A stretch of DNA of 64,000 nucleotides from IMGVR_UViG_3300013093_000017:124001-188000, one strand, 5' to 3'; numbered from the stretch's first letter, positions 4,199 to 27,299 are shown. The notes: a model not told the origin generated them from the sequence alone. Numbers and translations are program-made.

Positions 4199-4199
4199 A

Positions 4200-5020: not shown

Positions 5021-5027
5021 CCCCCAA

Positions 5028-5082: not shown

Positions 5083-5105
5083 AGTATGACTAACAAGGAG
5101 ATATT

Positions 5106-9879: not shown

Positions 9880-10238
9880 TGATTAAGAATATCGTACAAG
9901 CAAGCTCATTCGTAACTGTCAGTAGTTATATGCCTCAGGTATATGGATCAGGCAATATGAGTGGGCAGATGCGATATAATACCAATTCACAATCTGTTGA
10001 AGTATATGACGGAAATAATTGGATTAGTATTAGTCAACAAGCATCAGTTGGATTGAGCTACGAAGCAGAAGAAGCAATGCGCTGGGCCATTAACAAAAAA
10101 CGCGAAGAAGCAGAGATTAAAGAACTAGCAGAGAAACATAAAGCTGTGGCTGCTGCATTAGAAAACCTAAATAAAGCACAAGAACAATTAAAGATAGTAG
10201 CACACTTATCGAAGGATACAGATGAAACAACAAGTTAA
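9879..10238 (+). CDS. Hypothetical protein
   Basis: GQMRYN...VEVYDGNNW motif plus coiled coil; translationally coupled. Confidence 0.6.
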   Translation: MIKNIVQASSFVTVSSYMPQVYGSGNMSGQMRYNTNSQSVEVYDGNNWISISQQASVGLSYEAEEAMRWAINKKREEAEIKELAEKHKAVAAALENLNKAQEQLKIVAHLSKDTDETTS

Positions 10239-11853
10239 CCTAACCCCATTACAGAAAGACTACGCAGTATATCTACCAGCGATTAGTTCATTCTATAGTA
10301 CCTATATCGCCAAACAACGATTAGAGAAATTTATTTCAGATGACCGTATTCCAGCAGGGTTTGATCGCGGTATTGAAGGTATGAATTTCTTAAATCCAGA
10401 AGAAGGATACTTTACCTACAAGTACGGTCTATATTCAGCAGGTCACGCACAGTTAGATTTGCAAAAATCAATTACACAAGAGTCAATGATTCAACAACGT
10501 GATCGTGCCAACACAATGATCTTAGGTGACTCAGGTGGTTACCAAATTGGTAAGGGCGTTCTTAAGTTTGATTGGTTAAATTTTGATGGTCCGGCTGCTA
10601 ACAAAACACGACAAAGCATCTTAGAGTGGTTAGAAATGACTGCTGATTGGTCAATGATGTTAGACGTTCCGACATGGGCATGTGATCGTATCCATAGTCC
10701 AAAGACAGGATTGAAATCTTTTGAAGACTGTTTAGAAAAAACTAGATTTAATAATGACTATTTCTTAAAAAATCGTTTAGGTCATACCAAATGGTTGAAT
10801 GTATTACAAGGTGGTGATTGGGATACTGCGGAGAAATGGTACAACGGTGTTAAAGAATATAGTGATCCAAATGGTCCTTATGCGGGCAGTGAAGCAGAAG
10901 GTTGGGCATTTGGTGGTGCTAATATGTGTAAGATGGACATCACACTTAAACGTCTAATGACTATGCGTGAAGATGGTCTACTAAAAGGTAAGAATTGGAT
11001 TCACTTCTTGGGTACAGCACAATTAGATTGGGCCTGTTACTTAACCAGCATCCAAAGACAAATAAGGAAACATATCAATGAAGAACTTACAATATCGTTT
11101 GATTGCGCATCACCATTCATTGCAACTGCGCACGGGCTTGTCTACACTAATGCACAACATACCCCAAAACGTTGGAGTGTCATTATGGACAAGGCGCCTG
11201 ATAATAAAGCACTTTCAGGTAGCGATATCCCTTTTCCGTTCGAAAGCGAGTTTGGAAGACGGTTAACCATGAAAGATATTGCCTACTATGACCTAGGTGT
11301 GCCAAAAACACAGGAAGAATTAGGCAAGGATGTTAAATTTAATCACTTAAATCCTGAACATTATACAGTAGTTCCAAAACTTAATAAGTTAGGTAAGATT
11401 CCTAACAAAACAAGTTGGGATAGTTTTGCCTATGCATTAATGATGGGACATAATGTTTACTGTCATATTGTTGCTGTACAACGTGCTAATCAATTAGCTG
11501 ACATCGAATCAACGAGATTTAAACCAGATTGGCGTCATTGGAAGAAATTAAACGCAAAAGATTCAGGTGGTGATCAGTTTAGTGATTGGGTTCCTCGTAA
11601 TATATTGTACTTCAATCAATTCATTAAAGAATTGTTTAACACCCAGACTAAAGAAGAAGCGTTTGAGATGATTCAACAGGCTCGTCCATTCTTAACAAGT
11701 TTAGAAGGTGCAAGGCTACAAGGTGGACCTGCTCAAAATACATTTACTAATTTATTTGATGTTGAAGAAATAACTACAGCAGAAGAAGTAGACTTAGAAA
11801 ATCCAGACGATGACGAACTACGTGCATTAGAACAAGGACTAAATGATGAATAG
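10222..11853 (+). CDS. Divergent TGT/DpdA-like transglycosylase (predicted DNA 7-deazaguanine insertion enzyme)
   Basis: TGT-fold motifs in order: GDSGGYQ, MMLDVP, VLQGG, WAFGG, IHFLG, SFDCAS and GHN; neighbours folE and queE. Confidence 0.75.
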   Translation: MKQQVNLTPLQKDYAVYLPAISSFYSTYIAKQRLEKFISDDRIPAGFDRGIEGMNFLNPEEGYFTYKYGLYSAGHAQLDLQKSITQESMIQQRDRANTMILGDSGGYQIGKGVLKFDWLNFDGPAANKTRQSILEWLEMTADWSMMLDVPTWACDRIHSPKTGLKSFEDCLEKTRFNNDYFLKNRLGHTKWLNVLQGGDWDTAEKWYNGVKEYSDPNGPYAGSEAEGWAFGGANMCKMDITLKRLMTMREDGLLKGKNWIHFLGTAQLDWACYLTSIQRQIRKHINEELTISFDCASPFIATAHGLVYTNAQHTPKRWSVIMDKAPDNKALSGSDIPFPFESEFGRRLTMKDIAYYDLGVPKTQEELGKDVKFNHLNPEHYTVVPKLNKLGKIPNKTSWDSFAYALMMGHNVYCHIVAVQRANQLADIESTRFKPDWRHWKKLNAKDSGGDQFSDWVPRNILYFNQFIKELFNTQTKEEAFEMIQQARPFLTSLEGARLQGGPAQNTFTNLFDVEEITTAEEVDLENPDDDELRALEQGLNDE

Positions 11854-12004
11854 ATTAAATGAATTAATTCAAAGACAAACTGAGTTAGAAGAACAAATTC
11901 GTACAGGTAAGAGTAAGTACTTAGATGATGCTAACTGCGGCAAAGCTGAACAAGAATTAATGATTGTTACTCGTTTAATAGAAGATATCAAAAATGCAGC
12001 GTGA
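11843..12004 (+). CDS. Small coiled-coil hypothetical protein (53 aa, not in ORF track)
   Basis: AAGGA RBS, then MMNRLNELIQRQTELEEQIRTG...IKNAA*; fills the gap between its neighbours. Confidence 0.55.
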   Translation: MMNRLNELIQRQTELEEQIRTGKSKYLDDANCGKAEQELMIVTRLIEDIKNAA

Positions 12005-12539
12005 TTATAATACAGGTGTAGCAGATTCAGTAATATTCTTTATCGGTGACGAGATTGAACAAACTCCTGCATACGGATTACGAACATTATTTGTTGTAGG
12101 TGTTCACGAGTCCAATGACATTCTAAAATTATTAAACACAAAACTTGCCCACAGCAACATTCAACATATCTATTTTGGGGCTAATCAGAGCTTTCCTAAT
12201 CCGGACATAAACAATGCGATTGTTTGGAAAGAATGGGAAGATATGATTATCGCCTGTCTAGAAGCAGGTTATTGGTGTACTCTAGATTTAGATGTACGCT
12301 GTGCTGAAGGATTAGTAGAAGGTCCATTGGTAGAAAATCGTAGATTTATTCCACAGTTAAGTGTAAAGATTCCATACTTGACACAGTTGGGATATAATGC
12401 TACAATTAAATTAGACGACAAAGGATTTGAGGCAAGTAATCCCGGCGTCTGGTGTCATACATTACATTCATTAACTACTAGAGATTCATTCACAAGTTGG
12501 GATGAATACGGTAAAGACGAGATAATTAAACGTGATTAA
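11994..12539 (+). CDS. Uncharacterised protein in the DNA-modification cluster
   Basis: 181-aa ORF overlapping both neighbours, with enzyme-like motifs (HIYFGANQSF, IKLDD, NPGVWCH). Confidence 0.65.
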   Translation: MQRDYNTGVADSVIFFIGDEIEQTPAYGLRTLFVVGVHESNDILKLLNTKLAHSNIQHIYFGANQSFPNPDINNAIVWKEWEDMIIACLEAGYWCTLDLDVRCAEGLVEGPLVENRRFIPQLSVKIPYLTQLGYNATIKLDDKGFEASNPGVWCHTLHSLTTRDSFTSWDEYGKDEIIKRD

Positions 12540-12921
12540 TAAACGAATTTGGGTAACCTTTCAAAAAGAAGGCATTCATTGCTATCCTGCGGCAGCAACT
12601 GACCCTAACCTTAATACTGGAGATGCATATGATGTATCGTTTCTTGCTAGTCCTCACCGCCACATTTTTCATTTCAGGGTGTCAATCAGTGTGTTCCATA
12701 ACGACAGGGACATCGAATTCATCCAGTTCAAACGGTGGCTTGAAACCATGTATGTGGGTAGCGGTGCCACTTTAGAACTAAATTATAAGAGCTGTGAGAT
12801 GATCGCAGATGATCTTTACAAAGAGATCGCTCAAAAGTATCCTAATCGTGATGTTTGGATAGAAGTATCCGAAGATGGCGAGAATGGGTGTTATCATGAG
12901 TACATTAGTACTCGTTCGTAA
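12532..12921 (+). CDS. QueD/PTPS-like T-fold protein with LxxxHRHxF motif (DpdL-like candidate)
   Basis: EGIH...LASPHRHIF...SCEMIA...VSED; the canonical QueD CxxxHGH motif is replaced. Confidence 0.7.
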   Translation: MINKRIWVTFQKEGIHCYPAAATDPNLNTGDAYDVSFLASPHRHIFHFRVSISVFHNDRDIEFIQFKRWLETMYVGSGATLELNYKSCEMIADDLYKEIAQKYPNRDVWIEVSEDGENGCYHEYISTRS

Positions 12922-12947
12922 ACTGTCACAATCTAAGGAGATTTACC

Positions 12948-13187
12948 GTGGCTAATCCAAAATGGCTAAACAAATATCTAACAATAAAGCCAGAAGTACA
13001 TAAGATCTATGATGATCTTGATGCGTGGTTAAACTATTGCAGGTTTAACTTAACCAAGTTTGATCCAGCGGATCTATACAAGTCACCAGCTTGTAAAGAA
13101 TGGCTAGAAAAACGCCGTCGTCGTCAGCAATGGCAACAACGTAATGGTCAGACCAGCAATGGTTATCAAGGTAAGAATCCACGCTAG
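12948..13187 (+). CDS. Hypothetical protein
   Basis: AAGGAG RBS and GTG start. Confidence 0.6.
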   Translation: MANPKWLNKYLTIKPEVHKIYDDLDAWLNYCRFNLTKFDPADLYKSPACKEWLEKRRRRQQWQQRNGQTSNGYQGKNPR

Positions 13188-14011
13188 GAACTGTGAGTAT
13201 ATTGTTCCATTAGTTGAGATAGGGTAATATGGCATTTAGTATTTTTGATAGAATTATCTAAATGCCACAACATACGCAGATTTGTCCAATGCCCTATAAC
13301 CTCAGGAGAGATTCCTTGTTTGAATCCTTCCTCTACAGAAAATATATGATCTAAATGGTATTTGTATCTTGCTCGTGGTAAGTTACTAGGGTTGATTTTA
13401 TAATAATGGGTATGGTAAGATTTAGCAGTAATCTTCTTTACAGCAAGTCTATAAAGTTCTAATTCGCTACGATGCTCGTCACTTACCCAATCACCTGTAG
13501 AAATACGAGATTTTCTAATTTTAGCAGTTACATCTTTTGATTTAGAAGGATTATCTACTCCGTATTTTTCTATACAGGTTTCCTTGTGTTTGTTTTTTAC
13601 CTGTTCAGATTTGAATGGGTTGTCTACTCCATATTTTTCTATACAGGTATTTTTTACTGTATTCCTAAATTCAGTAGATTGAGAGGCAAACTCTGTTCCG
13701 TATTTTGCCAAACAAGCGGCTTTGTATTTTTTCAAGAATGCTGGATTACGATTCCTGCAAGAAGAAGAGCAGTTTTGGGTATACCCGCTCCGGAGTCCGG
13801 TAAATCTTAAAGGGTTAACACGGCATACTGGACATAATATCGGAATGACAGATCCTTCTAAATATAATTCGTGAAATGCTTTTTGAAACAACGGCCATTC
13901 TGAAGGATATTCTGTTAAACAAGTTCCAATATAGTTCTTGATTATAGGTCGTAAATCTGTTATTTTATTTGGATAAGTTTCTATTAACTTTTTTATTTCA
14001 TTTTTAGTCAT
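13184..14011 (-). mobile_element. Free-standing HNH-type endonuclease with KYGxxN repeats
   Basis: CPVC...CSSSC; three KYG(V/T)xx repeats; YHLDHIFS...NLRML...N HNH-like core; antisense to the operon; TATAAATA on the - strand at 14046-14053. Confidence 0.75.
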
Positions 14012-14016
14012 AATAC

Positions 14017-14045
14017 TTGACTCTCAATAATAAGTAGTATATACT
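14017..14045 (+). promoter_or_regulatory. sigma70 promoter for the glycosyltransferase operon
   Basis: TTGACT-N17-TATACT; GGAGG RBS before ATG 14078. Confidence 0.65.
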
Positions 14046-14077
14046 TATTTATACATTATGGCACGGAGGCTTACTTA

Positions 14078-15184
14078 ATGAAACCTACAATTTGGATTTT
14101 CTCGCTTGAGCCAATTGAAACCAGATATACAGCACAATGGCATAAACATATTCCAAAACTACTCAAGAACAACTTAGGAGATAAGTTTAATATAGTTCAG
14201 GTTGATGGTATCCAGAAAGACAGCCAACTTACTCCGGGTGCTTTCTTAAACTTTTCAGATACTAACTATTGGAAAAGTTCGCAATTATGTAATTTTTTAG
14301 AGCATCATAATAGAGGAGAAACTTCCACCGACGATCACATCCTTTTTACCGACGCTTGGAATCCTACGGTTATCCAACTCAAATATATGAAGGATCTGTT
14401 AGGCTTTAACTGGACCTTACACGGTATGTTCCACGCGGGGTCATATGATCCTCAGGACTTCTTGGGTAGATTAATTGGTCCTGCGGCTTGGGTTAGAAAT
14501 GCTGAGAAGAGCTTCTTTGCAGCCATCGATCACAACTACTTTGCAACTAGATTCCATATAGATATGTTTGTTGACAATCTACTAGAAAATGGAGTACCGC
14601 GTGAGAATCCGTGGGCTGATGAAGATAAAGCAAGTTTGCTTATGAACTATAAGATTGTACGTAGTGGTTGGCCTATGGAATATATGGAACATACCTTAGA
14701 TATCTATAAAGGTATGCCCAAGCGCGATCTTATCTTATTTCCTCATCGTATCGCTCCTGAGAAACAGGTTGAGATATTTAGAGATCTAGCACAGGCATTA
14801 CCGCAGTTCGAATGGGTTATTTGTCAAGAACAACAATTAACAAAGAACGAATATCACAATCTATTAGGTGAAGCTAAGATGGTGTTTAGTGCTAACCTAC
14901 AAGAAACATTGGGCATTAGTATGTACGAAGGTGCATTACTAGATGCTATCCCAATGGTTCCAGACAGATTGAGCTACAGTGAAATGTTTGCTAATGTTTG
15001 GAAATACCCAAGTGAGTGGACAGAATCATGGGACAGCTATCTTACCCATAGAAAAGAACTATGTGAGCTGATCGTTGATTATATGGAAAATTATAACGAG
15101 TATGTTAAATTTATTAAGCAACAGGCATATAGTTTAACCAAAGAGTTTTTCAATGCTGGACAATTATTAGAGAGATTAAAATGA
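14078..15184 (+). CDS. GT-B fold glycosyltransferase (GT4-like)
   Basis: FPHRIAPEK and the ETLGISMYEG (E-x7-E) signature. Confidence 0.8.
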   Translation: MKPTIWIFSLEPIETRYTAQWHKHIPKLLKNNLGDKFNIVQVDGIQKDSQLTPGAFLNFSDTNYWKSSQLCNFLEHHNRGETSTDDHILFTDAWNPTVIQLKYMKDLLGFNWTLHGMFHAGSYDPQDFLGRLIGPAAWVRNAEKSFFAAIDHNYFATRFHIDMFVDNLLENGVPRENPWADEDKASLLMNYKIVRSGWPMEYMEHTLDIYKGMPKRDLILFPHRIAPEKQVEIFRDLAQALPQFEWVICQEQQLTKNEYHNLLGEAKMVFSANLQETLGISMYEGALLDAIPMVPDRLSYSEMFANVWKYPSEWTESWDSYLTHRKELCELIVDYMENYNEYVKFIKQQAYSLTKEFFNAGQLLERLK

Positions 15185-15951
15185 AGATTGGAATTATCGG
15201 ATTAGGATTCGTAGGTGGTGCTGTTAAGGCAGCGCACGATTTAGTAGGTATTGAAACAGTTGATGTAGATCCTCATAAGGGATTGCCAGCAACATTAGCT
15301 GATGCTAAAGCGTGTGATGCTATCTACATCTGCGTGCCTAGCCCTATTGGATCAGATGGTGCTTGCGATACCAGCATCTTAGAAAACGTTATGGAACAGC
15401 TAACAGATTACACTGGCCCTATCATTAGTAAGGTCACTGCGCCACCTAGCGTATATGTTCGCTTACAAGAAAGTCATAAGAATCTTATTCATGCTCCAGA
15501 ATTCTTAGTTGCGGCAACTGCTAACGAAGATTACATCAACGGTACTTATGCCATTATCGGTGGATATGAACCTTATGCTACTCAGGCAGAAGCGGCTATC
15601 TTGGCAGCGCAACGCCGAGTAACTAACATTACTAAGATCGGAATAGGCGAGGCAGCATTAACAAAATATGCTATCAATACATTCTTATCTACAAAAGTTA
15701 TCTTTATGAATGAGCTAAAGGCACTTGCTGACGCTGCTGGAATTGATTACAATGTAGTTAAAGATACTATTCAGTTTGATTCACGTCAGGGTAATAGTCA
15801 TTTTGATGTACCTGGTCCAGATGGTAAGTTTGGATTCGGTGGTGCTTGCTTTCCAAAAGATACTTCGGCATTATTAAAATACGCTGAAGGATTAGGAGTT
15901 GAGTTAAGTGTATTAGCAAGTGCTGTGGCGAAAAATAAAATCATTCGTTAG
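15181..15951 (+). CDS. ugd: UDP-glucose/GDP-mannose 6-dehydrogenase, short form lacking the C-terminal domain
   Basis: GIIGLGFVG, ICVPSP, PEFL, KYAINTF and GFGGACFPKD. Confidence 0.9.
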   Translation: MKIGIIGLGFVGGAVKAAHDLVGIETVDVDPHKGLPATLADAKACDAIYICVPSPIGSDGACDTSILENVMEQLTDYTGPIISKVTAPPSVYVRLQESHKNLIHAPEFLVAATANEDYINGTYAIIGGYEPYATQAEAAILAAQRRVTNITKIGIGEAALTKYAINTFLSTKVIFMNELKALADAAGIDYNVVKDTIQFDSRQGNSHFDVPGPDGKFGFGGACFPKDTSALLKYAEGLGVELSVLASAVAKNKIIR

Positions 15952-15980
15952 TTGACAGAGCCTAAATAACCCTATATAAT
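15952..15980 (+). promoter_or_regulatory. Consensus sigma70 promoter with embedded late-type CTAAATA, upstream of folE
   Basis: TTGACA-N17-TATAAT exact; CCTAAATA at 15961-15968. Confidence 0.8.
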
Positions 15981-16024
15981 ATTATTAAACATGGCAATCC
16001 ATCTGCCTTATCATCGGAGATAAA

Positions 16025-16723
16025 ATGGTAGCAAAATACACACCAGTTAGCGAAACTATTCGCAACAACTTAAAGAAAGACAACAAACGTTTCTGGGCTG
16101 GAGATAACATCTCAGAATACATCACAGAAGAAAACAAAGCCCTATTAATTGACGAAGCAACTCTAGCATTTGAAGGTGTGCTTGATACATTGTTAATTGA
16201 TCGTGAAAACGATCCTAACAGTCATGGTACAGCTAGACGTTTAGCCAAAATGTACTTTAATGAGATCATGGCCGGACGTTATGAACCTAATCCAGATGCT
16301 ACAGCATTTCCAAATGACAGCGAAGATCGTTATGAAGGTATGCTAGTAGTTCGCAGTGAACTACGCAGTATGTGTAGTCATCATCACCAACCGGTGGCGG
16401 GGGTTGCGTATATTGGGATTATTGCCGCTCAAAAGCTCATTGGTTTGTCTAAGTACACTCGTATTGCTCAGTGGTGTTCTCGTCGTGGTACTCTACAAGA
16501 AGAACTATGTAATGACATTGCTAGAGAGATTATGAAAGCAACAGGTAGTGAGGATGTAGCAGTTTATATAGAAGCCGAACACGGATGTTGCGTTAATAGA
16601 GGCATAATGGCACATTCGAGCTTAACCCAAACAACTGTATTACATGGTGCGTTTAAGAATGACTCAAGTACCAAAAAAGAGTTCTTTGATAATATCAAAC
16701 TACAAGCAAGAAACGGCAAGTAA
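16025..16723 (+). CDS. folE: GTP cyclohydrolase I
   Basis: SMCSHH, GLSK, LQE, AEHGC and RG motifs. Confidence 0.95.
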   Translation: MVAKYTPVSETIRNNLKKDNKRFWAGDNISEYITEENKALLIDEATLAFEGVLDTLLIDRENDPNSHGTARRLAKMYFNEIMAGRYEPNPDATAFPNDSEDRYEGMLVVRSELRSMCSHHHQPVAGVAYIGIIAAQKLIGLSKYTRIAQWCSRRGTLQEELCNDIAREIMKATGSEDVAVYIEAEHGCCVNRGIMAHSSLTQTTVLHGAFKNDSSTKKEFFDNIKLQARNGK

Positions 16724-17368
16724 ACTAAATCCATTCTCTCTCCAAGTTTTAGAGGAATCGATATTTAGGTGATCAATTTTCTTGCTTGCCCTACCATTGG
16801 TCACAGGGTAAGCATCTAAATTATTATAGATAGTGTTTAATGTCCATTCGGGGATATTTAGAACTTTGTGTATTTCTTTCTTAGTTTTGAATATGCCGAC
16901 TGGAGTAATGAATTTGTCTTTCAAAACACGAGGCGGGATGAAGTCTTTGGCAGCTCTATTTGCTTTCCAAGAGTTTAATCGTTTTTCCTGTATTGTAGGA
17001 TTTTTCATAGGATTATTAATGAGCATACGCAGACGAACTTGCTCAATAAGTTTGGGGGTAGAAAAAATGTTTTCTTTTCCTCGTCGATATCTAGGGCCAT
17101 TAAACGCACTTGATTTATTGAAGAAGCCATAAGCGTGACGCATTTTAATTTCATCTTGGAAATTATCCTGCATTTTGATTAGAAGGCAATGACACACTCG
17201 ATGTTCTTTATAGGTTAAATCTACTAAATTAGTAGGATCGTTTGTTCCACCTAACGATTTAGGAATGATATGATGGCATTGATTAAATTTAGAAGATTTT
17301 GTTCTATTTTCATTTAATGCTCTTGTAATTATTCTATAATATGTTATACTATATTTGTTAGTAATCAT
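16700..17368 (-). mobile_element. Free-standing HNH homing endonuclease
   Basis: CHHIIPKSLGGTNDPTNLVDLTYKEHRVCH; GAGG RBS before ATG 17368; GATAAATA on the - strand at 17395-17402; overlaps the folE 3' end. Confidence 0.88.
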
Positions 17369-17429
17369 AATACGCCTCATAAATTCTATATTATTATTTA
17401 TCTGGTTGTTGCGAAAATAGAGGTATTAA

Positions 17430-17645
17430 ATGAACGAGAAGATTAAACAACTTGCTGAACAGGCTGATAATTTTGCTGATGATAAAATTCGGATGCCTGG
17501 AGAATATCACCCAGATTGGCATGATGTGCGAGATGAAAAGTTTGCCGAGTTGATTGTTAAGGAATGTAGTAATTTCTTGAAAGATACATTGGACGATCAT
17601 TTTGCGGCAGAACAGTTAGAAGAACATTTCGGAGTTGAAGAATGA
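17430..17645 (+). CDS. Small phage protein (MNEKIKQLAEQA...EKFAELIVKEC...EHFGVEE)
   Basis: GAGG RBS; ATG start; 71 aa. Confidence 0.7.
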   Translation: MNEKIKQLAEQADNFADDKIRMPGEYHPDWHDVRDEKFAELIVKECSNFLKDTLDDHFAAEQLEEHFGVEE

Positions 17646-17743
17646 ACACAACTGTTCTTAAGGGTGCATTTAAATCTGATCCAGATACTAAGAAAGAGTT
17701 CTTTGACAATATTAAACTTCAACAGGAATTTGCTCCAAGATGA
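17642..17743 (+). pseudogene. Displaced duplicate of the FolE C-terminus (33-aa ORF)
   Basis: MNTTVLKGAFKSDPDTKKEFFDNIKLQQEFAPR* versus FolE TTVLHGAFKNDSSTKKEFFDNIKLQ: 21 of 25 residues identical. Confidence 0.85.
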
Positions 17744-17976
17744 TAGGCGCTGACGTAGTATGGTTTGGTGTAGGATTAGTCTTTGGAATATTCTTTGGCC
17801 TTAACCTTTACAATGATCGCAAGGCTAGTGATAAACAAAAGGCCTACGAACAAATAGATGAGCAGGTACGTAAAGATCTTATTCGCTATAAGAACATGAG
17901 CGAAAGTTTGTTAGAAGATGTTAAATTTTGGCGTCATCGCGCTAATACATTAAGAGATATAAAGGAAAAGAAATGA
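17740..17976 (+). CDS. Small membrane-anchored protein
   Basis: Hydrophobic N-terminus VVWFGVGLVFGIFFGL followed by coiled coil. Confidence 0.6.
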   Translation: MIGADVVWFGVGLVFGIFFGLNLYNDRKASDKQKAYEQIDEQVRKDLIRYKNMSESLLEDVKFWRHRANTLRDIKEKK

Positions 17977-18179
17977 CACCTAGCGTAGAAAATATGAAAC
18001 AAGGAACCTGCGGTTGTGGACGCAGTTTAAGTGGTGATTGCGATGGCAGTCATGCTTTGAGTGAAGAAATGTGGCAGAATAAACTAGATCAATTAATTCG
18101 TGAAGAAAAAGAACTTAAAGACGAATTAGACGATGACGATATTGACGATAATCACAATGTTAGCAACCAAGGAGGTTAG
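17973..18179 (+). CDS. CDGSH-type iron-sulfur mini-protein
   Basis: CGCGRSLSGDCDGSH motif. Confidence 0.7.
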   Translation: MTPSVENMKQGTCGCGRSLSGDCDGSHALSEEMWQNKLDQLIREEKELKDELDDDDIDDNHNVSNQGG

Positions 18180-18182
18180 TAA

Positions 18183-18530
18183 ATGAGTACAGGAATAAGT
18201 GTAGGTTATAAAGAATCAAATCGTTCAAATCGTAGAGAAACCCCAACAGGTAGAGGCATGTTAAAGAACTTAATTATCAAATGGGCAGATGCTATCTATC
18301 GTAATGAAAGCAATAAACTAACTACAATCGAAATGTCTGATCCGAGCATCAATAGCGATAAAGGTATTAACTTTAGTGTGTATAAAGCTAATGGTGGTAT
18401 GGTAATCGAAACACGGTTCTACGATGATAGTAAGGATCGCAATCGTCGTGGCTTATATGTTATTACAGAAGAACAAGATATGGGTCAAGAGATTGCTAAG
18501 ATCATCACAATCGAATCATTAAAACAATGA
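18183..18530 (+). CDS. Hypothetical protein
   Basis: GGAGG RBS; operonic. Confidence 0.6.
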   Translation: MSTGISVGYKESNRSNRRETPTGRGMLKNLIIKWADAIYRNESNKLTTIEMSDPSINSDKGINFSVYKANGGMVIETRFYDDSKDRNRRGLYVITEEQDMGQEIAKIITIESLKQ

Positions 18531-18868
18531 GTCAAATATTTCTCCCCGCTGGTGCATCTGCTAACAAGTCTGGTAATAATACCGTGATTGGTGGCGCTAT
18601 TAACAATATTACCATAGCAAATGGTGGTACAGGATATGGGGCTGGAAGCAACACTACATTTAGCGGTGCTGGTACAGCTGGTACAGTAGGACCGACAGGA
18701 ACTTTTGGATGGTCTTATACCGATCAACAGCACGAGTGGATGTTAGAATATAAACTCGATCCTATTAAAATGGGCCTGATGTGTGAAAAATTTCCAGCAC
18801 TAGCTAAGAGTTGGAGTCAGTTTAAAATGTTGTATAATCTATGTAAATCGGAAGAAGAGAATGGATAA
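18527..18868 (+). CDS. Hypothetical protein with Gly/Thr-rich N-terminal half
   Basis: Coupled ORF; MCEKFPALAKSW C-terminus. Confidence 0.55.
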   Translation: MSQIFLPAGASANKSGNNTVIGGAINNITIANGGTGYGAGSNTTFSGAGTAGTVGPTGTFGWSYTDQQHEWMLEYKLDPIKMGLMCEKFPALAKSWSQFKMLYNLCKSEEENG

Positions 18869-19382
18869 GAGACGAATCAGTTTTGAAGAATATCGAGGAT
18901 ATGTTGGCGCTATCTGCCGAGATATCACTATTAGCGATTGGATGCCTGATTATGTAGTAGGTGTTACTCGCGGCGGATTACTGGCTGCTACAATGATCAG
19001 TCATTACTTTAAGATCCCAATGCATACATTAAAAGTAGCCTTACGTGATCACGCAGACACAGAAAGCAATCTTTGGATGGCAGAGGATGCATACGGATAC
19101 AACGGCGAGGTAGGTGATCAAGTTGCTAAAAACATTTTGATTGTAGATGATATTAACGACACTGGCGAAACACTAAACTGGATTATGAAAGATTGGCAAA
19201 CTAGTTGCTTACCCAGCGATGCTCGATGGAATCATGTTTGGAATCAAAATGTAAAGTTTGCTACAATTGTAGATAACTTAGATAGTGATTGCAAGGTTAA
19301 GATGGACTATGTTGGTTTTGAAATTAATAAAGCAGAGGAAGATGTTTGGATTGATTTTCCTTATGAATCTTGGTGGGAATAA
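18861..19382 (+). CDS. Purine phosphoribosyltransferase (Gpt/Hpt-like)
   Basis: VGVTRGGL, the PRPP loop ILIVDDINDTGET, and WIDFPYE. Confidence 0.88.
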   Translation: MDKRRISFEEYRGYVGAICRDITISDWMPDYVVGVTRGGLLAATMISHYFKIPMHTLKVALRDHADTESNLWMAEDAYGYNGEVGDQVAKNILIVDDINDTGETLNWIMKDWQTSCLPSDARWNHVWNQNVKFATIVDNLDSDCKVKMDYVGFEINKAEEDVWIDFPYESWWE

Positions 19383-19396
19383 CTAAAGGAACTATT

Positions 19397-20116: not shown

Positions 20117-20286
20117 TCCTTAGCAACTATGCCCACGAAAATAGAACAGCAAATGTTTGCAAACAGAGCGGAGAGTATGTTATAATGTGTTATGAAGATG
20201 GGCATTACATACGTTCAGAAATAGCATTAAGTGAAACATCAGCTGATGATATTGCAGAAGATTGGGTATTTAAAAGTGATAACTAA
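20113..20286 (+). CDS. Small hypothetical protein (57 aa, not in ORF track)
   Basis: ATGA overlap; MILSNYAHENR...ADDIAEDWVFKSDN*. Confidence 0.55.
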   Translation: MILSNYAHENRTANVCKQSGEYVIMCYEDGHYIRSEIALSETSADDIAEDWVFKSDN

Positions 20287-20548
20287 CAAAACACAAGAAG
20301 CATTGATTATTCTGCAGGAAGAATGTGCTGAAGTAATACAGGCAGCTAGTAAAATATATCGATTTGGGCTAGATAATTCTCACAAATCAGGCCTTACCCA
20401 ACGAGCTAATTTAGAAATGGAAATTGGCGATATGCTGTCCCTGGTAGATATTTTAGTTGAGCAAGGTGTTCTAGACCTAAATAATTTAAACACTGCTAAA
20501 TTAAACAAAATTGAAAAACTTAAAATATGGTCAAAATTATATGAGTAA
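20276..20548 (+). CDS. MazG-like NTP pyrophosphohydrolase
   Basis: LQEECAEVIQA...LEMEIGD (EExxE...ExGD); probable GTG start at 20276. Confidence 0.75.
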   Translation: MITNKTQEALIILQEECAEVIQAASKIYRFGLDNSHKSGLTQRANLEMEIGDMLSLVDILVEQGVLDLNNLNTAKLNKIEKLKIWSKLYE

Positions 20549-21383
20549 AATTAAAGTAGCAGAGCTGTTTTACAGCATACAGGGCGAAGGTCGCTATATG
20601 GGAGTACCTAGCGTGTTCCTTAGAACTTTTGGCTGCAATTTTTCTTGTAGGGGCTTCGGTATGGGTAAAGGGCAATTGAGTGAAGAATACTTAACTGTTA
20701 ATCCAGAACTATACACAAAATATGATGAACTTCCACTAGTTAGTACAGGGTGCGATAGTTATGCTAGTTGGGATCCACGCTTTAAGCATTTAAGTCCAAT
20801 GTTAGAGTCAGATGCTATTGCAGAAGCAATTGCAGATATGTTGCCTTATAAAGATTGGAATGACGAACATTTAGTTATCACAGGCGGCGAGCCTTTGCTA
20901 GGATGGCAACGTGCTTATCCAGATCTATTAGATCATCCCAAAATGAAGAATCTAAAAGAGATCACATTTGAAACAAATGGTACTCAAGAATTATCACCAG
21001 AACTTAGAACATATCTACTCAATTGGCAAAGTGAAAACTTTGATAGAGAAGTAACTTTTAGTGTAAGTGCTAAATTAAGTGCAAGTGGTGAACATCCAGA
21101 CGAAGCAATTAAACCTGAGATTGTGTGTTCGTATGAAGAAGCAGGTTATACATATCTTAAGTTTGTTATTGCAACAGAAGAAGATGCAGAAGAAGCATTA
21201 GAAGCCGCAGATATCTATCAACAAAATGGGTTTACTGGTCCAATTTATCTAATGCCAGTCGGCGGGGTTGAAAGCGTTTATGCATTAAACAACCGTCGTG
21301 TAGCAGAATTAGCAATGAAACACGGCTTGCGATATAGTGATAGGCTGCAAGTTCCGTTATTTAAAAATGAATGGGGTACATAA
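20541..21383 (+). CDS. queE: 7-carboxy-7-deazaguanine synthase (radical SAM)
   Basis: ELFYSIQGEG, FLRTFGCNFSC...GCDS (CxxxC with a long insertion before the third Cys), ITGGEP, ETNG and RLQ. Confidence 0.9.
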   Translation: MSKIKVAELFYSIQGEGRYMGVPSVFLRTFGCNFSCRGFGMGKGQLSEEYLTVNPELYTKYDELPLVSTGCDSYASWDPRFKHLSPMLESDAIAEAIADMLPYKDWNDEHLVITGGEPLLGWQRAYPDLLDHPKMKNLKEITFETNGTQELSPELRTYLLNWQSENFDREVTFSVSAKLSASGEHPDEAIKPEIVCSYEEAGYTYLKFVIATEEDAEEALEAADIYQQNGFTGPIYLMPVGGVESVYALNNRRVAELAMKHGLRYSDRLQVPLFKNEWGT

Positions 21384-22478
21384 TTGAGTTATCTATTTAC
21401 ATCAGAATCTGTTAGTGAAGGACATCCGGATAAAGTAGCAGATGCTATTAGTGATGCTATTTTAGACCTAGTTATGGTACACGAAGATCCAAGTATGCGG
21501 GTTGCTTGCGAAACTTTAGTTACTACTAATCGTGTTGTACTTGCAGGAGAGTATAAAAATGTTGCCCTACACAATGCGCAGATCGATAGTGCTGTAAGAA
21601 AAGTTATCAAAAATATTGGCTACGAACAAGAAGGATTTGATTGGCGTACAGTTGAGATCACTAACTTATTACATGCACAAAGCGCAGACATTGCACTCGG
21701 TACTGATAACTTCGGAGCAGGCGATCAAGGACTGATGTTTGGGCACGCTACTAAAGAAACTCCGAACTATATGCCTGCGGCGATTTATTACAGCCATAAG
21801 ATTATGGAATATTTGACAACAATGCGTAAAGGTGGGCAAACTTGGTTAGGTCCAGATGCTAAAGCACAGGTAACATTAAATTACATTGGTAATAAAGCTC
21901 GTTATGCTACTAAGATTGTATGTTCAACTCAGCATAGTCAAGGTGTAGAAGTTGAAGAGCTACGTCCTGTAATTGAAACTTATATTAGAGAGTGTGTTCC
22001 GGAGATTATCACAGATGCTACCGAATTTCTTATCAATCCTACTGGTCGTTTTGTCATTGGTGGGCCCGACGGTGATACTGGCCTCACCGGACGAAAAATT
22101 ATCGTGGATACCTACGGTGGCAGTTGTCCTCATGGTGGCGGTGCTTTTAGCGGCAAAGATCCTACAAAAGTTGATCGTAGTGCCGCTTATATGGCTAGGT
22201 ACTTGGCTAAGAACATTGTAGCCAGCGGTCGCGCAAATGTAGCAACTGTTCAATTAAGCTATGCTATTGGTGTTGCTGATCCAATGAGTGTGTACATTGA
22301 CTGCGATGGAAATTGCGAAGGCATTAGAGATTGGATAATTAAACATGTTGATCTAACTCCAAAGGGTATTATAGATAGATTTAATATGTTTCGTCCTATC
22401 TATAGTCAAACTACTAACTACGGACACTTTGGCAAAGATTTTTTGCCTTGGGAAGCTGTAGATTTATTTAAGGTGTAA
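21384..22478 (+). CDS. metK: S-adenosylmethionine synthetase
   Basis: FTSESVSEGHPDK, GAGDQG and GGGAFSGKD; TTG start directly after the queE stop. Confidence 0.97.
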   Translation: MSYLFTSESVSEGHPDKVADAISDAILDLVMVHEDPSMRVACETLVTTNRVVLAGEYKNVALHNAQIDSAVRKVIKNIGYEQEGFDWRTVEITNLLHAQSADIALGTDNFGAGDQGLMFGHATKETPNYMPAAIYYSHKIMEYLTTMRKGGQTWLGPDAKAQVTLNYIGNKARYATKIVCSTQHSQGVEVEELRPVIETYIRECVPEIITDATEFLINPTGRFVIGGPDGDTGLTGRKIIVDTYGGSCPHGGGAFSGKDPTKVDRSAAYMARYLAKNIVASGRANVATVQLSYAIGVADPMSVYIDCDGNCEGIRDWIIKHVDLTPKGIIDRFNMFRPIYSQTTNYGHFGKDFLPWEAVDLFKV

Positions 22479-22479
22479 T

Positions 22480-22968
22480 ATGAATATTATTCAAACATTA
22501 TTTGAAAAAGTTACGGGCATTGATAAGATACGTGCTAAAGCGGCTGCAGAAGCAGAAGCGGCTATTCAATTAGCCCTAGAAGCACAAGCTGAGGCAAAAG
22601 CATCTTCATTAGCAGCAGAAGAAGCAAAGGCAGAAGAAGTCGCAGCAAAAGAAGCAGAGCGTATTGCTAAATTAACGCCAAAAGAACTTGCTACAGAAAA
22701 GAAAGAGCCTTACATTGCAGTATTAGATACCAAAGTAAATCCAGAGAATCCTCGTAATGGATTTTTTGAGCTTGATTGGAATGAATATTTTATCATGCAA
22801 TTGAAAGAAGCAGGCTATTATGGTGAAACAGATGAAGAACTAGCAGATCGTTGGTTCCAAGATTTGTGTCGCAATATTGGTGCAGAATCAGGTGTAGATA
22901 TGGATCGTAGAGGTGCAGGATACATTAATGTAAATGATTTAGGTAATGGTAAGTCAGAGATTAGTTAA
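22480..22968 (+). CDS. Hypothetical phage protein
   Basis: Ala/Glu-rich N-terminal half; NGFFELDWNEYF core. Confidence 0.65.
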   Translation: MNIIQTLFEKVTGIDKIRAKAAAEAEAAIQLALEAQAEAKASSLAAEEAKAEEVAAKEAERIAKLTPKELATEKKEPYIAVLDTKVNPENPRNGFFELDWNEYFIMQLKEAGYYGETDEELADRWFQDLCRNIGAESGVDMDRRGAGYINVNDLGNGKSEIS

Positions 22969-23627
22969 TGTCAAGATTAACAGAGTGGCTCTACGGTATT
23001 CAACAACTAGGTTTACAAATTGATACAGTATATGATATTGGTGCCTGCGTAGGCAACTGGAGCCGCGAGATACAAGATAAAGTTTGCCCCAATGCAGACT
23101 TTATCCTGTTTGAAGCTAACCCTGCATATAATGAAATTTTATCTAATAGCAAATTCCGCTATTTCAATACAGTCCTAAGCAATCCCGGTAGAGAGTTTGT
23201 CGAATTCTACAATGGAACAAACACCGGCGATAGTTACTATAAAGAAAATACCACAACATACGACAATCAAACAACTGTTAGATTGCTCTGCTCCACACTT
23301 GATGCTATAATAAATGAATACAACCTGCCAATTCCTAATCTTATTAAACTTGATACACAAGGTTCTGAATTAGATATTTTAGCAGGGGCTGAATCTATTG
23401 TAGATAAAGTAGATTTAATGTATGTAGAATGTCCAATTATAAACTATAATATTGGAGCACCTAGCATACAAGATTATTTAGATTACTTTAAGAACAAAGA
23501 GTTTGTGCCAGTTGATTTACTTGAAACGCATCAAAACGAGAATATACTATTACAAGTTGATATTATGTTTATGAAAAGAGAAACCAAAGAAAGGATCTTA
23601 ACTCCAACCCGTCAGGTAAGGATTTAA
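22968..23627 (+). CDS. FkbM-family SAM-dependent methyltransferase
   Basis: VYDIGACVG, FEANP and IKLDTQGSEL. Confidence 0.88.
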   Translation: MSRLTEWLYGIQQLGLQIDTVYDIGACVGNWSREIQDKVCPNADFILFEANPAYNEILSNSKFRYFNTVLSNPGREFVEFYNGTNTGDSYYKENTTTYDNQTTVRLLCSTLDAIINEYNLPIPNLIKLDTQGSELDILAGAESIVDKVDLMYVECPIINYNIGAPSIQDYLDYFKNKEFVPVDLLETHQNENILLQVDIMFMKRETKERILTPTRQVRI

Positions 23628-27205: not shown

Positions 27206-27215
27206 TAAAGCAAAT

Positions 27216-27239
27216 AAAAGGCCCTACGGGGCCTTTTTT
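27216..27239 (+). terminator. Rho-independent terminator
   Basis: aaaaGGCCC-TACG-GGGCCtttttt (UACG tetraloop). Confidence 0.88.
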
Positions 27240-27242
27240 CAC

Positions 27243-27271
27243 TTGTGTTATGGTAAAGAAGAGTGTATAAT
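27243..27271 (+). promoter_or_regulatory. sigma70-type promoter
   Basis: TTGTGT-N17-TATAAT. Confidence 0.6.
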
Positions 27272-27299
27272 ATATACATATTAAACAGAAAGGTATATT

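Follow-up and report, generated by a model that had tools for sequence, protein, structure and literature searches.

Several systems are known in which 7-deazaguanines are built and then placed in DNA or decorated with further groups. Cellulophaga phage phiST, which carries DpdA3, DpdL, FolE, QueD, QueE and MazG, has 100% dDG, made by a pathway without QueC in which DpdL is proposed to decarboxylate 7-carboxy-7-deazaguanine (CDG) (Cui et al. 2023, PMC10516641). In the bacterial Dpd restriction-modification system DpdA and DpdB insert preQ0 and DpdC makes dADG (PMC10164549), and the DNA of Campylobacter phage CP220 (Firehammervirus) carries dADG without any reported sugar. T-even phages use alpha- and beta-glucosyltransferases to decorate 5-hydroxymethylcytosine in DNA and so evade restriction. 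Outside DNA, in the biosynthesis of huimycin and dapiramicin, a 7-deazaguanine base derived from FolE, QueD and QueE is glycosylated on its 2-amino group by HuiG and methylated by the SAM-dependent HuiC (PMC7439116). This pathway uses preQ0 (QueC is present), involves no TGT/DpdA and no DNA, and yields a small-molecule antibiotic of actinomycetes. It is the only documented case we found of a glycosyltransferase (GT) acting on a free 7-deazaguanine base.

Here we analysed a window of 64,000 nucleotides (IMGVR_UViG_3300013093_000017:124001-188000) from an uncultured jumbo phage distantly related to Pseudomonas phage PA5oct. Positions 10222-23627 hold a 7-deazaguanine DNA-modification module inside the replication module of the phage. 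A sequence-only reading had placed a TGT/DpdA-like gene, an unknown 181-aa protein, a T-fold protein, a GT, a UDP-glucose dehydrogenase, folE, a CDGSH protein, a phosphoribosyltransferase, a MazG-like gene, queE, metK and an FkbM methyltransferase in this region, and its observation is confirmed: all of these ORFs exist on the + strand, although one assignment (CDGSH) could not be confirmed.

That reading had put the module directly after the polymerase and clamp, but these genes are not directly adjacent to each other or to the TGT-like gene; a homing endonuclease and a 119-aa ORF lie between them. The DNA polymerase (5467-8139, +), the upstream boundary of the replication module, is 53% identical in tblastn to the split polymerase of PA5oct, 50% to that of Phosso and 27% to that of ACP17. 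The sliding-clamp-like protein (9142-9879, +) has no Pfam hit but is 35% identical to the Phosso protein annotated "sliding clamp beta" and is conserved in 49 of 50 relatives. The sequence-only reading also omitted three free-standing homing endonuclease genes that interrupt the block. The first (8187-9077, +; Pfam NUMOD3 E 1e-16, HNH weak) lies between the polymerase and the clamp-like gene and is present in only 6 of 50 relatives. The second (13184-14011, -; Pfam DUF7487 E 3.5e-19, PHROG "homing endonuclease") is inserted between the gene for a 79-aa protein and the GT and was found only in the two contigs identical to the window. The third is an HNH enzyme (16700-17380, -; Pfam HNH E 7e-5, PHROG "homing endonuclease" E 1e-19). 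The downstream boundary of the module is an RNase H / 5'-3' exonuclease (23634-24620, +; Pfam 5_3_exonuc_N E 1e-18), 51% identical to PA5oct RNaseH.

The presumed base-exchanging enzyme is a 543-aa protein (10222-11853, +). It has no Pfam, PHROG, NCBIfam or PADLOC hit, and only profiles and motifs reveal it as a very divergent tRNA-guanine-transglycosylase (TGT/DpdA) relative. The motifs DSGGxQ, LDxP, QG, HxLG and SxD are invariant across 22 phage and bacterial homologues. When the 22-sequence profile was searched against the PDB, 45 of 49 hits were tRNA-guanine transglycosylases (best E 0.004). Hhalign gives 87% probability (E 4e-6) to E. coli TGT and 95.8% to the DpdA group of ACP17, BUCT-ZZ01 and BCSR5. 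The homologue in Vibrio phage 2.275.O sits with QueF, QueC, FolE and QueE.

Two conserved genes follow. The 181-aa protein (11994-12539, +), of unknown fold and function, is present in 50 of 50 relatives, and its homologues were found only in PA5oct-like phages and ACP17, where it lies between FolE and DpdA. Its AF2 model (pLDDT 76) has no fold match in the PDB (best E 0.1), and in BFVD only the ACP17 homologue matches. The 129-aa T-fold-like protein (12532-12921, +) carries the LxxxHRHxF motif and is homologous to DpdL. In tblastn it is 33% identical (E 2e-8) to phiST CGPG_00067, which is DpdL, and 55-67% identical to the proteins of PA5oct, ACP17 and Phosso; His16, His42 and His44 are invariant, and it is present in 50 of 50 relatives. 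Between this gene and the GT lies a small basic protein of 79 aa (12948-13187, +; pI 9.8) without any family hit, present in 49 of 50 relatives.

The base-synthesis genes are incomplete within the window. FolE (16025-16723, +) is clear (Pfam E 1e-40, PHROG E 1e-44), with a 12/12 sigma-70 consensus just upstream at 15952-15980. The QueE-like radical-SAM CDG synthase (20511-21383, +) scores below the NCBIfam cut-offs (E 3e-14 to 9e-11), but it is 49% identical to the annotated QueE of phage BUCT-ZZ01 and 31% to the annotated CDG synthase of PA5oct, and it is present in 43 of 50 relatives, a count limited by flank length. The CxxxHGH motif of canonical QueD does not occur in any frame of the window, and we found no QueD for this genome. 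QueC, QueF or Gat gave no hit among the ORFs scanned with Pfam, which were all of those of at least 100 aa outside the late structural block.

The 368-aa protein (14078-15184, +) is predicted to have a GT-B, GT4-like fold. Its AF2 model (pLDDT 76.5) hits glycogen synthase, BshA, PglA, GlgM, SenB and MshA in Foldseek at E 3e-6 to 1e-4 (probability 1.0, TM 0.5-0.6), and a profile search hits PglH/WlaC at E 0.0018. R224, K229, E276 and E284 (EX7E motif) are conserved. The absence of this gene beside the TGT-like gene in relatives had been named in advance as grounds for rejecting the idea, and this clearly did not happen. In IMG/VR, 50 of 50 relatives with at least 4.5 kb of flank have the DpdA-like gene, the 181-aa gene, DpdL and the GT. 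The GT also lies beside or near DpdL in six cultured phage lineages: PA5oct-like phages, Phosso, ACP17, BCSR5, cyanophage BUCT-ZZ01 and Xanthomonas X1/BUDD. A scan of 185,579 genomes with the GT alone gave 30 loci; 26 have a DpdA-like gene within about 2-3 kb, and the other 4 are cut by contig ends. These loci include GT-DpdL-DpdA triads in islands of Magnetospirillum, Aurantimonas and Methylobacterium. BUCT-ZZ01 carries a second GT in the same cluster. We found no paper that links this transferase to DpdA or DpdL.

One could argue that the module makes only plain dDG or dCDG, and that the GT acts on a protein, a host envelope precursor or another DNA position and sits nearby for regulatory reasons. 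phiST makes its dDG with DpdL and no GT, 7-deazaguanine offers no obvious acceptor group at C7, and jumbo phages and cyanophages often carry GTs for surface polysaccharides (PMC7824862). However, a bystander would not stay next to the DpdA-like gene in 50 of 50 phage relatives, six cultured phage lineages and about 20 bacterial islands retrieved through the GT alone. No other sugar-pathway or envelope genes accompany it. Nor is a hydroxymethyl-pyrimidine route evident in the window, which has an ordinary ThyA-DHFR pair. We consider this explanation unlikely.

It is similarly doubtful, although possible, that the GT is an obligatory helper of this DpdA clade that leaves no sugar in the DNA, by delivering or activating the base, making a transient glycosyl intermediate or serving as a structural subunit, analogous to the need of bacterial DpdA for DpdB. 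The final base would then be dDG or a similar known base. The GT is tied more tightly to the DpdA-like gene than DpdL is, as eight bacterial loci have DpdA plus GT without DpdL. Furthermore, ACP17 dpdA plus dpdL without the GT was inactive in E. coli, and the DpdA-like proteins are very divergent and lack a CxCxxC motif of the kind that binds zinc in canonical TGT. In contrast, the conserved nucleotide-sugar binding residues are as expected of an active transferase, and the coupled dehydrogenase-like enzyme described below and the second GT of BUCT-ZZ01 suggest real sugar chemistry.

The rest of the chemistry first proposed, in which, after a stop at CDG or decarboxylated DG, the base or another DNA position may be glycosylated with a uronic acid and possibly O-methylated, is weaker. 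The supposed UDP-glucose dehydrogenase (15181-15951, +) is not a canonical one. It has the Rossmann and central catalytic-Cys domains (Pfam UDPG_MGDP_dh central domain E 7e-22, N domain E 3e-12) but scores only 122 bits against a TIGR03026 cut-off of 190. The alignment keeps the PEFL, K, N and GGxCxPKD sites and ends where the C domain of E. coli Ugd begins. The UDP-binding C-terminal domain is missing in the window, in all 17 relatives and in CP220. The gene is present in only 16 of 50 relatives, always directly after the GT, and its ATG overlaps the GT stop codon (ATGA). SAM synthetase MetK (21384-22478, +) has all three Pfam domains (E 1e-34 to 1e-56) but occurs in only 1 of 34 other loci that hold QueE and the 162-aa gene described next. 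The FkbM-family methyltransferase (22968-23627, +; TIGR01444 E 3e-19, Pfam Methyltransf_21 E 1e-13) was found in 0 of 31 relatives that hold both flanking genes. Hence, a uronic acid plus O-methyl group is at best a strain-specific elaboration. Between these two genes, a conserved 162-aa protein (22480-22968, +; PHROG 13349 "virion structural protein" E 2.5e-15), also found in relatives and PA5oct, is probably a virion protein and not part of the pathway. The CDGSH assignment for a 68-aa Cys-rich acidic protein (17973-18179, +) was not confirmed: the translation contains a CGCG...CDGSH string, but the Cys spacing deviates from the canonical motif, there is no Pfam or PHROG hit, and the protein is present in 6 of 50 relatives.

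A type I phosphoribosyltransferase (18861-19382, +; Pfam Pribosyltran E 2e-11) is present in 20 of 50 relatives, and a homologue annotated xanthine-guanine PRTase sits next to QueE in BUCT-ZZ01. A MazG-like NTP pyrophosphohydrolase (20231-20548, +; PHROG 4856 E 5e-20, Pfam MazG E 5e-4, below cut-off) is present in 30 of 50. These genes raise the possibility of a pre-replicative route, in which the phosphoribosyltransferase converts the deazaguanine base to a nucleotide, MazG removes dGTP and the polymerase incorporates the analogue, so that the TGT-like protein would not be the main inserter. PRTase and MazG-like genes recur in these clusters, BUCT-ZZ01 included, phiST has MazG and a kinase-like gene, a CDG-specific PRTase is known from tubercidin biosynthesis (cited in 10.64898/2026.04.15.718813), and the ADG nucleoside was seen in cells infected with CP220 (PMC10516641). 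We regard this route as quite improbable, for the following reasons. First, PRTase and MazG are not universal in the clade, whereas the DpdA-like gene is. Second, PA5oct seems to be modified only in GA or GG contexts, which fits sequence-specific post-replicative exchange. Third, the bacterial islands have DpdA and GT but no PRTase.

Least likely of all is that the target is tRNA. TGT enzymes are ancestrally tRNA enzymes, GT4-family enzymes glycosylate queuosine in animals, and a TGT-like enzyme plus a GT4-type GT would parallel eukaryotic queuine insertion followed by mannosylation of queuosine; seven bacterial loci also carry a weak YhhQ-like transporter gene beside the DpdA-like gene and the GT. 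However, in phages the genes sit between DNA polymerase/clamp and RNase H, and the window has no tRNA genes. PA5oct DNA itself resists G-containing restriction enzymes and is targeted by sensors of modified G (PMC12191111). The Magnetospirillum island has a nuclease-like gene next to the GT and an integrase gene a few kb downstream, typical of DNA-level conflict systems.

The explanation we favour, with a probability of roughly 55%, is a QueC-less, DpdL-type 7-deazaguanine DNA-modification module with an added glycosylation step. In this view FolE, a QueD probably encoded outside the window, and QueE turn GTP into CDG, the DpdL homologue processes CDG (decarboxylation to 7-deazaguanine in the published proposal), and the 543-aa enzyme exchanges this base for guanine in phage DNA. 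The GT would then add a sugar from a nucleotide-sugar to the deazaguanine, either on the free base before insertion, for which HuiG is a precedent, or once the base is in DNA. Where present, the dehydrogenase-like enzyme, translationally coupled to the GT, may oxidise the sugar after transfer, and the phosphoribosyltransferase may recycle released guanine; MazG, MetK and the FkbM methyltransferase are likewise accessory, the last two being specific to this genome. Our analysis establishes gene identities, fold classes and co-occurrence, whereas every enzymatic step, the GT acceptor and the final structure of the base are inferred, in the absence of chemical data from any GT-containing phage. 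A glycosylated deazaguanine, which would be a modified guanine not yet described, is plausible but unproven. There are also arguments against it. Without a C7 substituent the sugar would have to sit on N2, O6 or elsewhere, and a TGT-type pocket normally reads the 2-amino group, which argues against inserting an N2-glycosylated base. The GT family is acidic (pI 5.4-7.0) and no T4-type DNA glucosyltransferase is among its top 50 fold hits, which gives no positive sign of DNA binding. The bacterial loci without DpdL make the link to DG specifically loose, and the activity of DpdL is only proposed even in phiST. The interpretation of the sequence-only reading is partly supported: this is a QueC-less 7-deazaguanine DNA-modification locus, and stopping at CDG or DG matches the published proposal for DpdL, but glycosylation of the base itself remains an inference.

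Compared with phiST, the locus shares the QueC-less CDG pathway, the DpdL homologue, a TGT-superfamily inserter, a MazG-like gene and a location next to the DNA polymerase. phiST lacks the GT, the 181-aa gene and the dehydrogenase-like gene and has a kinase-like gene instead, and its DpdA3 is 259 aa and not detectably related to the 543-aa protein in our profile tests (probability below 10%). T-even phages share the principle of a GT-B enzyme decorating an already modified base, but there the base is a pyrimidine whose acceptor hydroxymethyl group is made at nucleotide level, and T4 beta-GT is not among the top 50 structural matches of our GT. As in the bacterial Dpd system, a TGT-family enzyme would insert a 7-deazaguanine into DNA, and the bacterial GT-DpdL-DpdA islands sit with nuclease-like, HEPN and integrase genes, reminiscent of defence islands. 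However, no PADLOC model, DpdA included, matches the window protein or its bacterial homologues, and a GT is present instead of DpdB-K genes. CP220 encodes, one gene away from QueE, a 256-aa UGDH-like protein with the same truncated architecture as that at 15181-15951, but it has no homologue of the GT. Its DNA carries dADG without any reported sugar, so the short dehydrogenase need not act on a sugar. The true relatives are the uncharacterised clusters of Acidovorax phage ACP17 and of the PA5oct-like Pseudomonas jumbo phages (Wroclawvirus), which hold the same gene families (43-55% identity for PA5oct). ACP17 has QueD-FolE-181-aa gene-DpdA-GT-DpdL-QueE, and PA5oct has pol-clamp-DpdA-GT-DpdL...QueE...RNaseH in the same order as the window. 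Both lack the UGDH-like, MetK and FkbM genes, and PA5oct keeps FolE, QueD and the 181-aa gene elsewhere in its genome.

The ORFs named in the sequence-only reading exist where it placed them, all on the + strand and mostly abutting or overlapping, and its observation is confirmed. The order begins with the DNA polymerase (5467-8139, +), an HNH/NUMOD3 homing endonuclease (8187-9077, +), a clamp-like protein (9142-9879, +), and a 119-aa ORF (9879-10238, +). It continues with the 543-aa TGT-like protein (10222-11853, +), a 181-aa protein (o181; 11994-12539, +), the 129-aa T-fold-like protein (12532-12921, +), and a 79-aa basic protein (o79; 12948-13187, +). A homing endonuclease on the opposite strand (13184-14011, -) then precedes the 368-aa glycosyltransferase (GT; 14078-15184, +), a 256-aa UGDH-like protein (15181-15951, +), and FolE (16025-16723, +). 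After an HNH endonuclease (16700-17380, -) and a stretch of small ORFs that are mostly on the + strand (about 17400-18900) come a phosphoribosyltransferase (18861-19382, +), a MazG-like protein (20231-20548, +), a QueE-like protein (20511-21383, +), MetK (21384-22478, +), a 162-aa virion-like protein (o162; 22480-22968, +), an FkbM methyltransferase (22968-23627, +), and RNase H/FEN (23634-24620, +).

FolE, MetK, the phosphoribosyltransferase, and FkbM have clear family matches, and the assignments of QueE and MazG are weaker but consistent. For QueE, five equivalog models hit at E 3e-14 to 9e-11 with scores of only 42-53 bits against cut-offs of 200-300, although the protein is 49% identical to the annotated QueE of the cyanophage BUCT-ZZ01. 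The CDGSH protein proposed from sequence alone has no database support. There is no CxxxHGH QueD motif in any frame of the window, and no QueC, QueF, or Gat family appears among the ORFs scanned. A search for the QueD of the source genome with the PA5oct QueD as query, followed by one iteration, returned only unrelated or CP220-like contigs.

With a further DUF7487 gene, four free-standing homing endonuclease genes pepper the replication and modification module (8187-9077, +; 13184-14011, -; 16700-17380, -; 28516-29142, -). Two are HNH, one of them with NUMOD3 motifs, and two are DUF7487. Those at 13184 and 16700 are absent from nearly all relatives, so they are recent insertions between pathway genes. 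A perfect TTGACA-17-TATAAT sigma-70 consensus lies directly upstream of folE (15952-15980, +) and a 10/12 match lies upstream of the GT (14017-14045), but promoter and terminator scans are not above chance overall. Elsewhere in the window, a 983-aa protein (975-3926, +) combines a weak cytidylyltransferase-like nucleotidyltransferase region with a C-terminal DUF6321; Campylobacter phage CP220 has a protein with a nucleotidylyltransferase domain a few genes from its QueE. A MoxR-like AAA_5 ATPase is followed by a DUF2201 metallopeptidase/VWA protein (26123-28553, +), a conserved two-gene pair of unknown role in phages. A single 4270-aa ORF (39958-52770, -) lies within a block of large minus-strand ORFs next to a gp25-like baseplate gene and is presumably a giant structural or fibre protein.

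A megablast search of the region against 50,697 deposited phage genomes gave no match. By protein, the nearest cultured relatives are the PA5oct-like jumbo phages of Pseudomonas aeruginosa, with 43.5% identity for the 543-aa protein and the same gene order (pol, clamp, TGT-like, GT, DpdL, QueE, RNase H). IMG/VR holds 350 loci that encode relatives of the 543-aa protein. The best 80 are 79-100% identical, and the window matches two contigs of 230 and 259 kb. The source contigs are IMGVR_UViG_3300013093_000017 and 3300013094_000017. Hence, this is an abundant, uncultured jumbo-phage clade.

The 543-aa protein is a member of the TGT superfamily, but a very divergent one. It has no Pfam, PHROG, NCBIfam, or PADLOC hit, nine family members gave no Pfam hit at E<=1 (PF01702 included), and neither phmmer with the single sequence nor a 9-sequence profile found anything relevant in the PDB. 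Only a profile of 22 sequences that includes bacterial homologues was informative: 45 of its 49 PDB hits are tRNA-guanine transglycosylases (best E 0.0043), and hhalign to E. coli TGT gives a probability of 86.8% (E 4e-6). The signal is weak but specific. Across these 22 sequences, down to 14% identity, D103-S-G-G-x-Q108, D148-x-P150, G197 (preceded by Q196), H261-x-L-G264, and D294 are invariant, and they line up with the DSGGFQ, LDEC, QG, MGVG, and catalytic FDC motifs of E. coli TGT (the Asp residues of the DSGGFQ, LDEC, and FDC motifs are Asp102, Asp156, and Asp280 in Z. mobilis numbering). A homology chain also runs through the shorter proteins of ACP17, BUCT-ZZ01, and BCSR5, the first of which we take to be the dpdA expressed by Cui et al. 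The window family links to that group at 95.8%, and that group links to E. coli TGT at 90%. In contrast, a link to phiST DpdA3 (CGPG_00065) is not supported, with hhalign probabilities of 10% or lower, and the protein has no CxCxxC motif of the kind that binds zinc in canonical TGT. It is best treated as a separate long DpdA clade.

Independent support from genomic context comes from Vibrio phage 2.275.O, where the homologue sits after pol and clamp and next to QueF, a YhhQ-type transporter, QueC, an amidohydrolase, FolE, and QueE. Gene 469 of that phage, which follows the DpdA-like gene, is not a GT homologue. That the window protein exchanges guanine in DNA is inferred only indirectly, from genomic context and from the restriction resistance of PA5oct DNA. 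An RNA target is a rival explanation, although we consider it very unlikely.

The 129-aa protein is a homologue of DpdL. It carries the LxxxHRHxF motif (LASPHRHIF at residues 38-46) that Cui et al. 2023 (PMC10516641) defined for the proposed CDG decarboxylase of phiST, a phage whose DNA has all G replaced by 2'-deoxy-7-deazaguanosine. H16, H42, and H44 are invariant in 16 homologues, and in three homologues (PA5oct, Ahp1, and Vibrio D479) the motif varies at one position: the Arg is replaced in two and the first Leu in one. The protein is 33% identical to phiST CGPG_00067 over 91% of the query (tblastn, E 2e-8) and 55-67% identical to homologues in PA5oct, ACP17, and Phosso. We found no Pfam PTPS hit at E<=0.01, and hhalign to a QueD alignment gave only 37% over 40 columns, a weak match, whereas Cui et al. 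report 99.9% by HHpred for the phiST protein. The context of the window, with DpdA-like, FolE, and QueE-like genes and without a QueC among the ORFs scanned, is that expected of DpdL. Decarboxylation remains a proposal even for phiST and ACP17: expression of dpdL plus dpdA from either phage in E. coli gave no dDG, and the authors noted that other enzymes might be required. In phiST, the protein between DpdL and DpdA3, CGPG_00066, has been described as unknown, yet it matches the P-loop kinase-like family AAA_18 (E 9e-7; positions 7320-7799 of our phiST locus), which might point to a nucleotide-level step in the dDG pathway.

The 368-aa protein is predicted to be a GT-B glycosyltransferase. Pfam is silent at E<=0.01 (neither Glycos_transf_1 nor Glyco_transf_4 matches), and none of 120 listed homologues carries a precomputed Pfam domain. 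A family profile hits the GT4 enzyme PglH/WlaC at E 0.0018, in an alignment that covers the R..K region. An AF2 model of moderate quality (pLDDT 76.5) matches GT-B enzymes by Foldseek with probability 1.0 and TM 0.5-0.6, including glycogen synthase, BshA, PglA, GtfA, GlgM, SenB, and MshA. R224, K229, and E284 are invariant and E276 is at least 90% conserved in an alignment reaching 24% identity; these residues form the R/K pair and the EX7E motif typical of GT4 donor sites. UDP-GlcNAc 2-epimerases share the fold and also appear among the hits, but the sequence motifs favour a transferase. T4 beta-glucosyltransferase (GT63) is not among the top 50 PDB matches. The possibility that the GT acts on hydroxymethyl-pyrimidines was set aside, since the window has a canonical DHFR-ThyA pair (30426-31783, +; ThyA E 1e-106) and no hydroxymethylase, and thymidine synthesis looks ordinary.

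Our key result is the co-occurrence of the GT with the DpdA-like gene. Fifty IMG/VR relatives have at least 4.5 kb downstream of the TGT-like gene; all 50 have o181, DpdL, and the GT, and 49 have o79. In cultured phages, GT homologues lie beside or close to DpdL homologues in six lineages: PA5oct-like phages, Sinorhizobium phage Phosso, Acidovorax phage ACP17 (QueD-FolE-o181-DpdA-GT-DpdL-QueE), Burkholderia phage BCSR5, the T4-like Synechococcus phage BUCT-ZZ01 (QueE-PRT-x-QueD-FolE-GT2-DpdA-DpdL-GT), and Xanthomonas phages X1 and BUDD. The second glycosyltransferase of BUCT-ZZ01 (Glyco_trans_1_4, E 3e-5; 4001-5344 of the locus) sits directly upstream of the DpdA gene, which hints at a disaccharide or two glycosylation steps in that phage.

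A scan of one genome per prokaryotic species with the GT alignment alone returned 30 loci. In 26 of them a TGT-like homologue lies within about 2-3 kb of the GT, and the other four are cut by contig ends. Eight of the loci look like mis-binned jumbo-phage contigs of this clade, which carry the pol, clamp, DpdA, DpdL, GT, QueE, RNaseH block within bacterial and archaeal MAGs; they include PBPT01000016.1 (335 kb, binned as Neomarinimicrobiota) and contigs binned as Pacearchaeota, Legionellales, and Methanobacteriota. The rest are chromosomal islands in Magnetospirillum, Pelagibacterium, Devosia, Ochrobactrum, Aurantimonas, Methylobacterium, Azospirillum, and Roseobacter. Thirteen have the GT-DpdL-DpdA triad, and eight have DpdA plus GT without DpdL, mostly with a weakly YhhQ-like membrane protein next to the GT (a weakly YhhQ-like transporter is found in seven loci). 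The Magnetospirillum aberrantis island reads HEPN, kinase, regulator, CoiA-nuclease-like, GT, DpdL, DpdA, x, QueD, then further genes and an integrase. Neighbours in the islands include CoiA-nuclease-like, HEPN, and integrase or resolvase genes, and no PADLOC model matches. The islands may represent an undescribed self-marking or defence system.

The GT is thus bound to this DpdA clade more tightly than DpdL is, which cannot be chance or mere hitch-hiking. One could still argue that the module makes plain dDG and that the GT is unrelated to it, or that the GT is an obligatory helper of DpdA that leaves no decoration on the base. We regard both as unlikely.

The UGDH-like protein is not the UDP-glucose dehydrogenase that the sequence-only reading took it for. 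It keeps the N-terminal Rossmann domain (Pfam E 3e-12) and the central domain (E 7e-22) with all catalytic residues (GxGxxG, PEFL, K162, N166, C223, and D227 are conserved), but it ends about 30 residues after the catalytic Cys, where the UDP-binding domain of E. coli Ugd begins. All 17 copies in relatives are equally short (256-273 aa full length; one ORF was called at 215 aa). TIGR03026 scores 122 bits against a cut-off of 189.8, and equivalog models score 56-95 bits against 670-757. The gene occurs in 16 of 50 relatives, where it always starts 0-65 nt after the GT stop and is followed by FolE; in the window the start and stop codons overlap as ATGA. Campylobacter phage CP220, whose DNA carries dADG, has a protein of the same truncated architecture (gp019, 256 aa; 6992-7762 of the CP220 locus) one gene from QueE, and it has no GT homologue. 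So this is a recurrent short dehydrogenase of phage deazaguanine clusters, perhaps an unrecognised component of these pathways, and not a UDP-glucuronate supplier. Oxidation of a sugar after transfer is one possibility, but the CP220 case warns that the enzyme may act on something else.

MetK is found in 1 of 34 comparable loci and FkbM in 0 of 31, and both are recent additions to this genome. The phosphoribosyltransferase (20 of 50 relatives) and MazG (30 of 50) recur, also in BUCT-ZZ01 and phiST, and may recycle released guanine or deplete dGTP. A nucleotide-level route to the modified base is a further rival, although an improbable one. o181 is conserved in the clade, in PA5oct, and in ACP17 only. 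It has no Pfam, PHROG, NCBIfam, or PADLOC hit, its AF2 model has no significant PDB match, and in BFVD the model matches only its ACP17 homologue. We had suspected a nucleoside 2-deoxyribosyltransferase or DNPH1-like fold, but nothing supports this, and hhalign found no relation to the Phosso 'glycosylase', to phiST CGPG_00066, or to neighbours in the bacterial islands.

The best-supported reading has four steps. GTP would go to CDG through FolE, QueD, and QueE; DpdL would process CDG; the long DpdA would insert the base into DNA; and the GT would add a sugar to the deazaguanine. QueD probably lies elsewhere in the genome, as in PA5oct, where FolE, QueD, and a second PTPS-like protein (1-3453 of that locus) lie 51-54 kb from the DpdA-GT-DpdL block, among ClpX, ClpS, and ribosomal protein S21 genes. 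The coupling of the GT to DpdA is real, but all catalytic steps are inferred, including base exchange in DNA, decarboxylation by DpdL, and the donor and acceptor of the GT. The earlier interpretation, that the deazaguanine or another DNA position may be glycosylated with a uronic acid and possibly O-methylated, is supported only in part: the uronic-acid and O-methyl details are not conserved. Pterin-glycoside synthesis, by analogy with cyanopterin, which contains 4-O-methyl-glucuronic acid, was also considered and set aside, because QueE and a TGT-like gene are always present and DpdL lacks the catalytic Cys of QueD/PTPS.

The GT accompanies DpdA both with DpdL (base presumably DG) and without it (base presumably a host-made or imported preQ-type compound). 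The attachment point is therefore more likely a position common to all 7-deazaguanines than the C7 substituent. The acidic pI of the GT family and its structural neighbours with small-molecule acceptors (BshA, MshA, SenB, GlgM) lean weakly towards action on the free base, whereas a TGT pocket that reads the 2-amino group argues the other way.

More speculatively, these phages and a set of bacterial genomic islands may put a glycosylated 7-deazaguanine, made by a dedicated DpdA-GT pair, into DNA, which to our knowledge would be the first sugar-bearing purine described in any genome. In about a third of the clade, a UGDH-derived enzyme that has lost its UDP handle would oxidise the sugar to a uronic acid after transfer, and in this one genome an FkbM methyltransferase might methylate it further. 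In bacteria the same pair, next to nuclease-like genes, would mark self DNA in a new restriction-modification-like system. This extended scenario is not excluded, but it is tentative, and we hold it to be less likely than not (a probability of roughly 0.35).

The DpdA-GT pairing is common: the GT family exceeds 8000 clusters at 90% identity in metagenomes. It also occurs in phages that can be grown and tested, namely PA5oct and Paride, both studied for therapy against P. aeruginosa, ACP17, Phosso, and BUCT-ZZ01. The pairing could explain why dpdA plus dpdL alone failed to give dDG in E. coli, and what the unidentified G modification of PA5oct is. Knowing the modification matters for sequencing these phages, for predicting which defences (type IV enzymes, END nucleases, DNA glycosylases) hit them, and for the enzymology of DNA-modifying tools.

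7-deazaguanine DNA modifications are a known anti-restriction strategy. Eight derivatives have been described, none of which carries a sugar, and as far as we know no glycosylated purine has been reported in DNA. Within a limited literature search, we found no paper that connects a glycosyltransferase, the short UGDH-like enzyme, or o181 to DpdA or DpdL. The only precedent we found for the proposed sugar transfer is HuiG of huimycin biosynthesis, which puts GlcNAc on the 2-amino group of a preQ0 derivative (PMC7439116). PA5oct was already noted to carry a deazaguanine system (PMC7824862), and its DNA resists G-containing restriction enzymes and is sensed as G-modified, although the base was not identified (PMC12191111). 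GA or GG has been suggested as the modified motif. DpdL and the cluster of ACP17 are in Cui et al. 2023. We therefore regard the module as a GT-coupled branch of the 7-deazaguanine DNA-modification systems, one that is widespread in environmental jumbo phages, in several cultured phages, and in bacterial islands.
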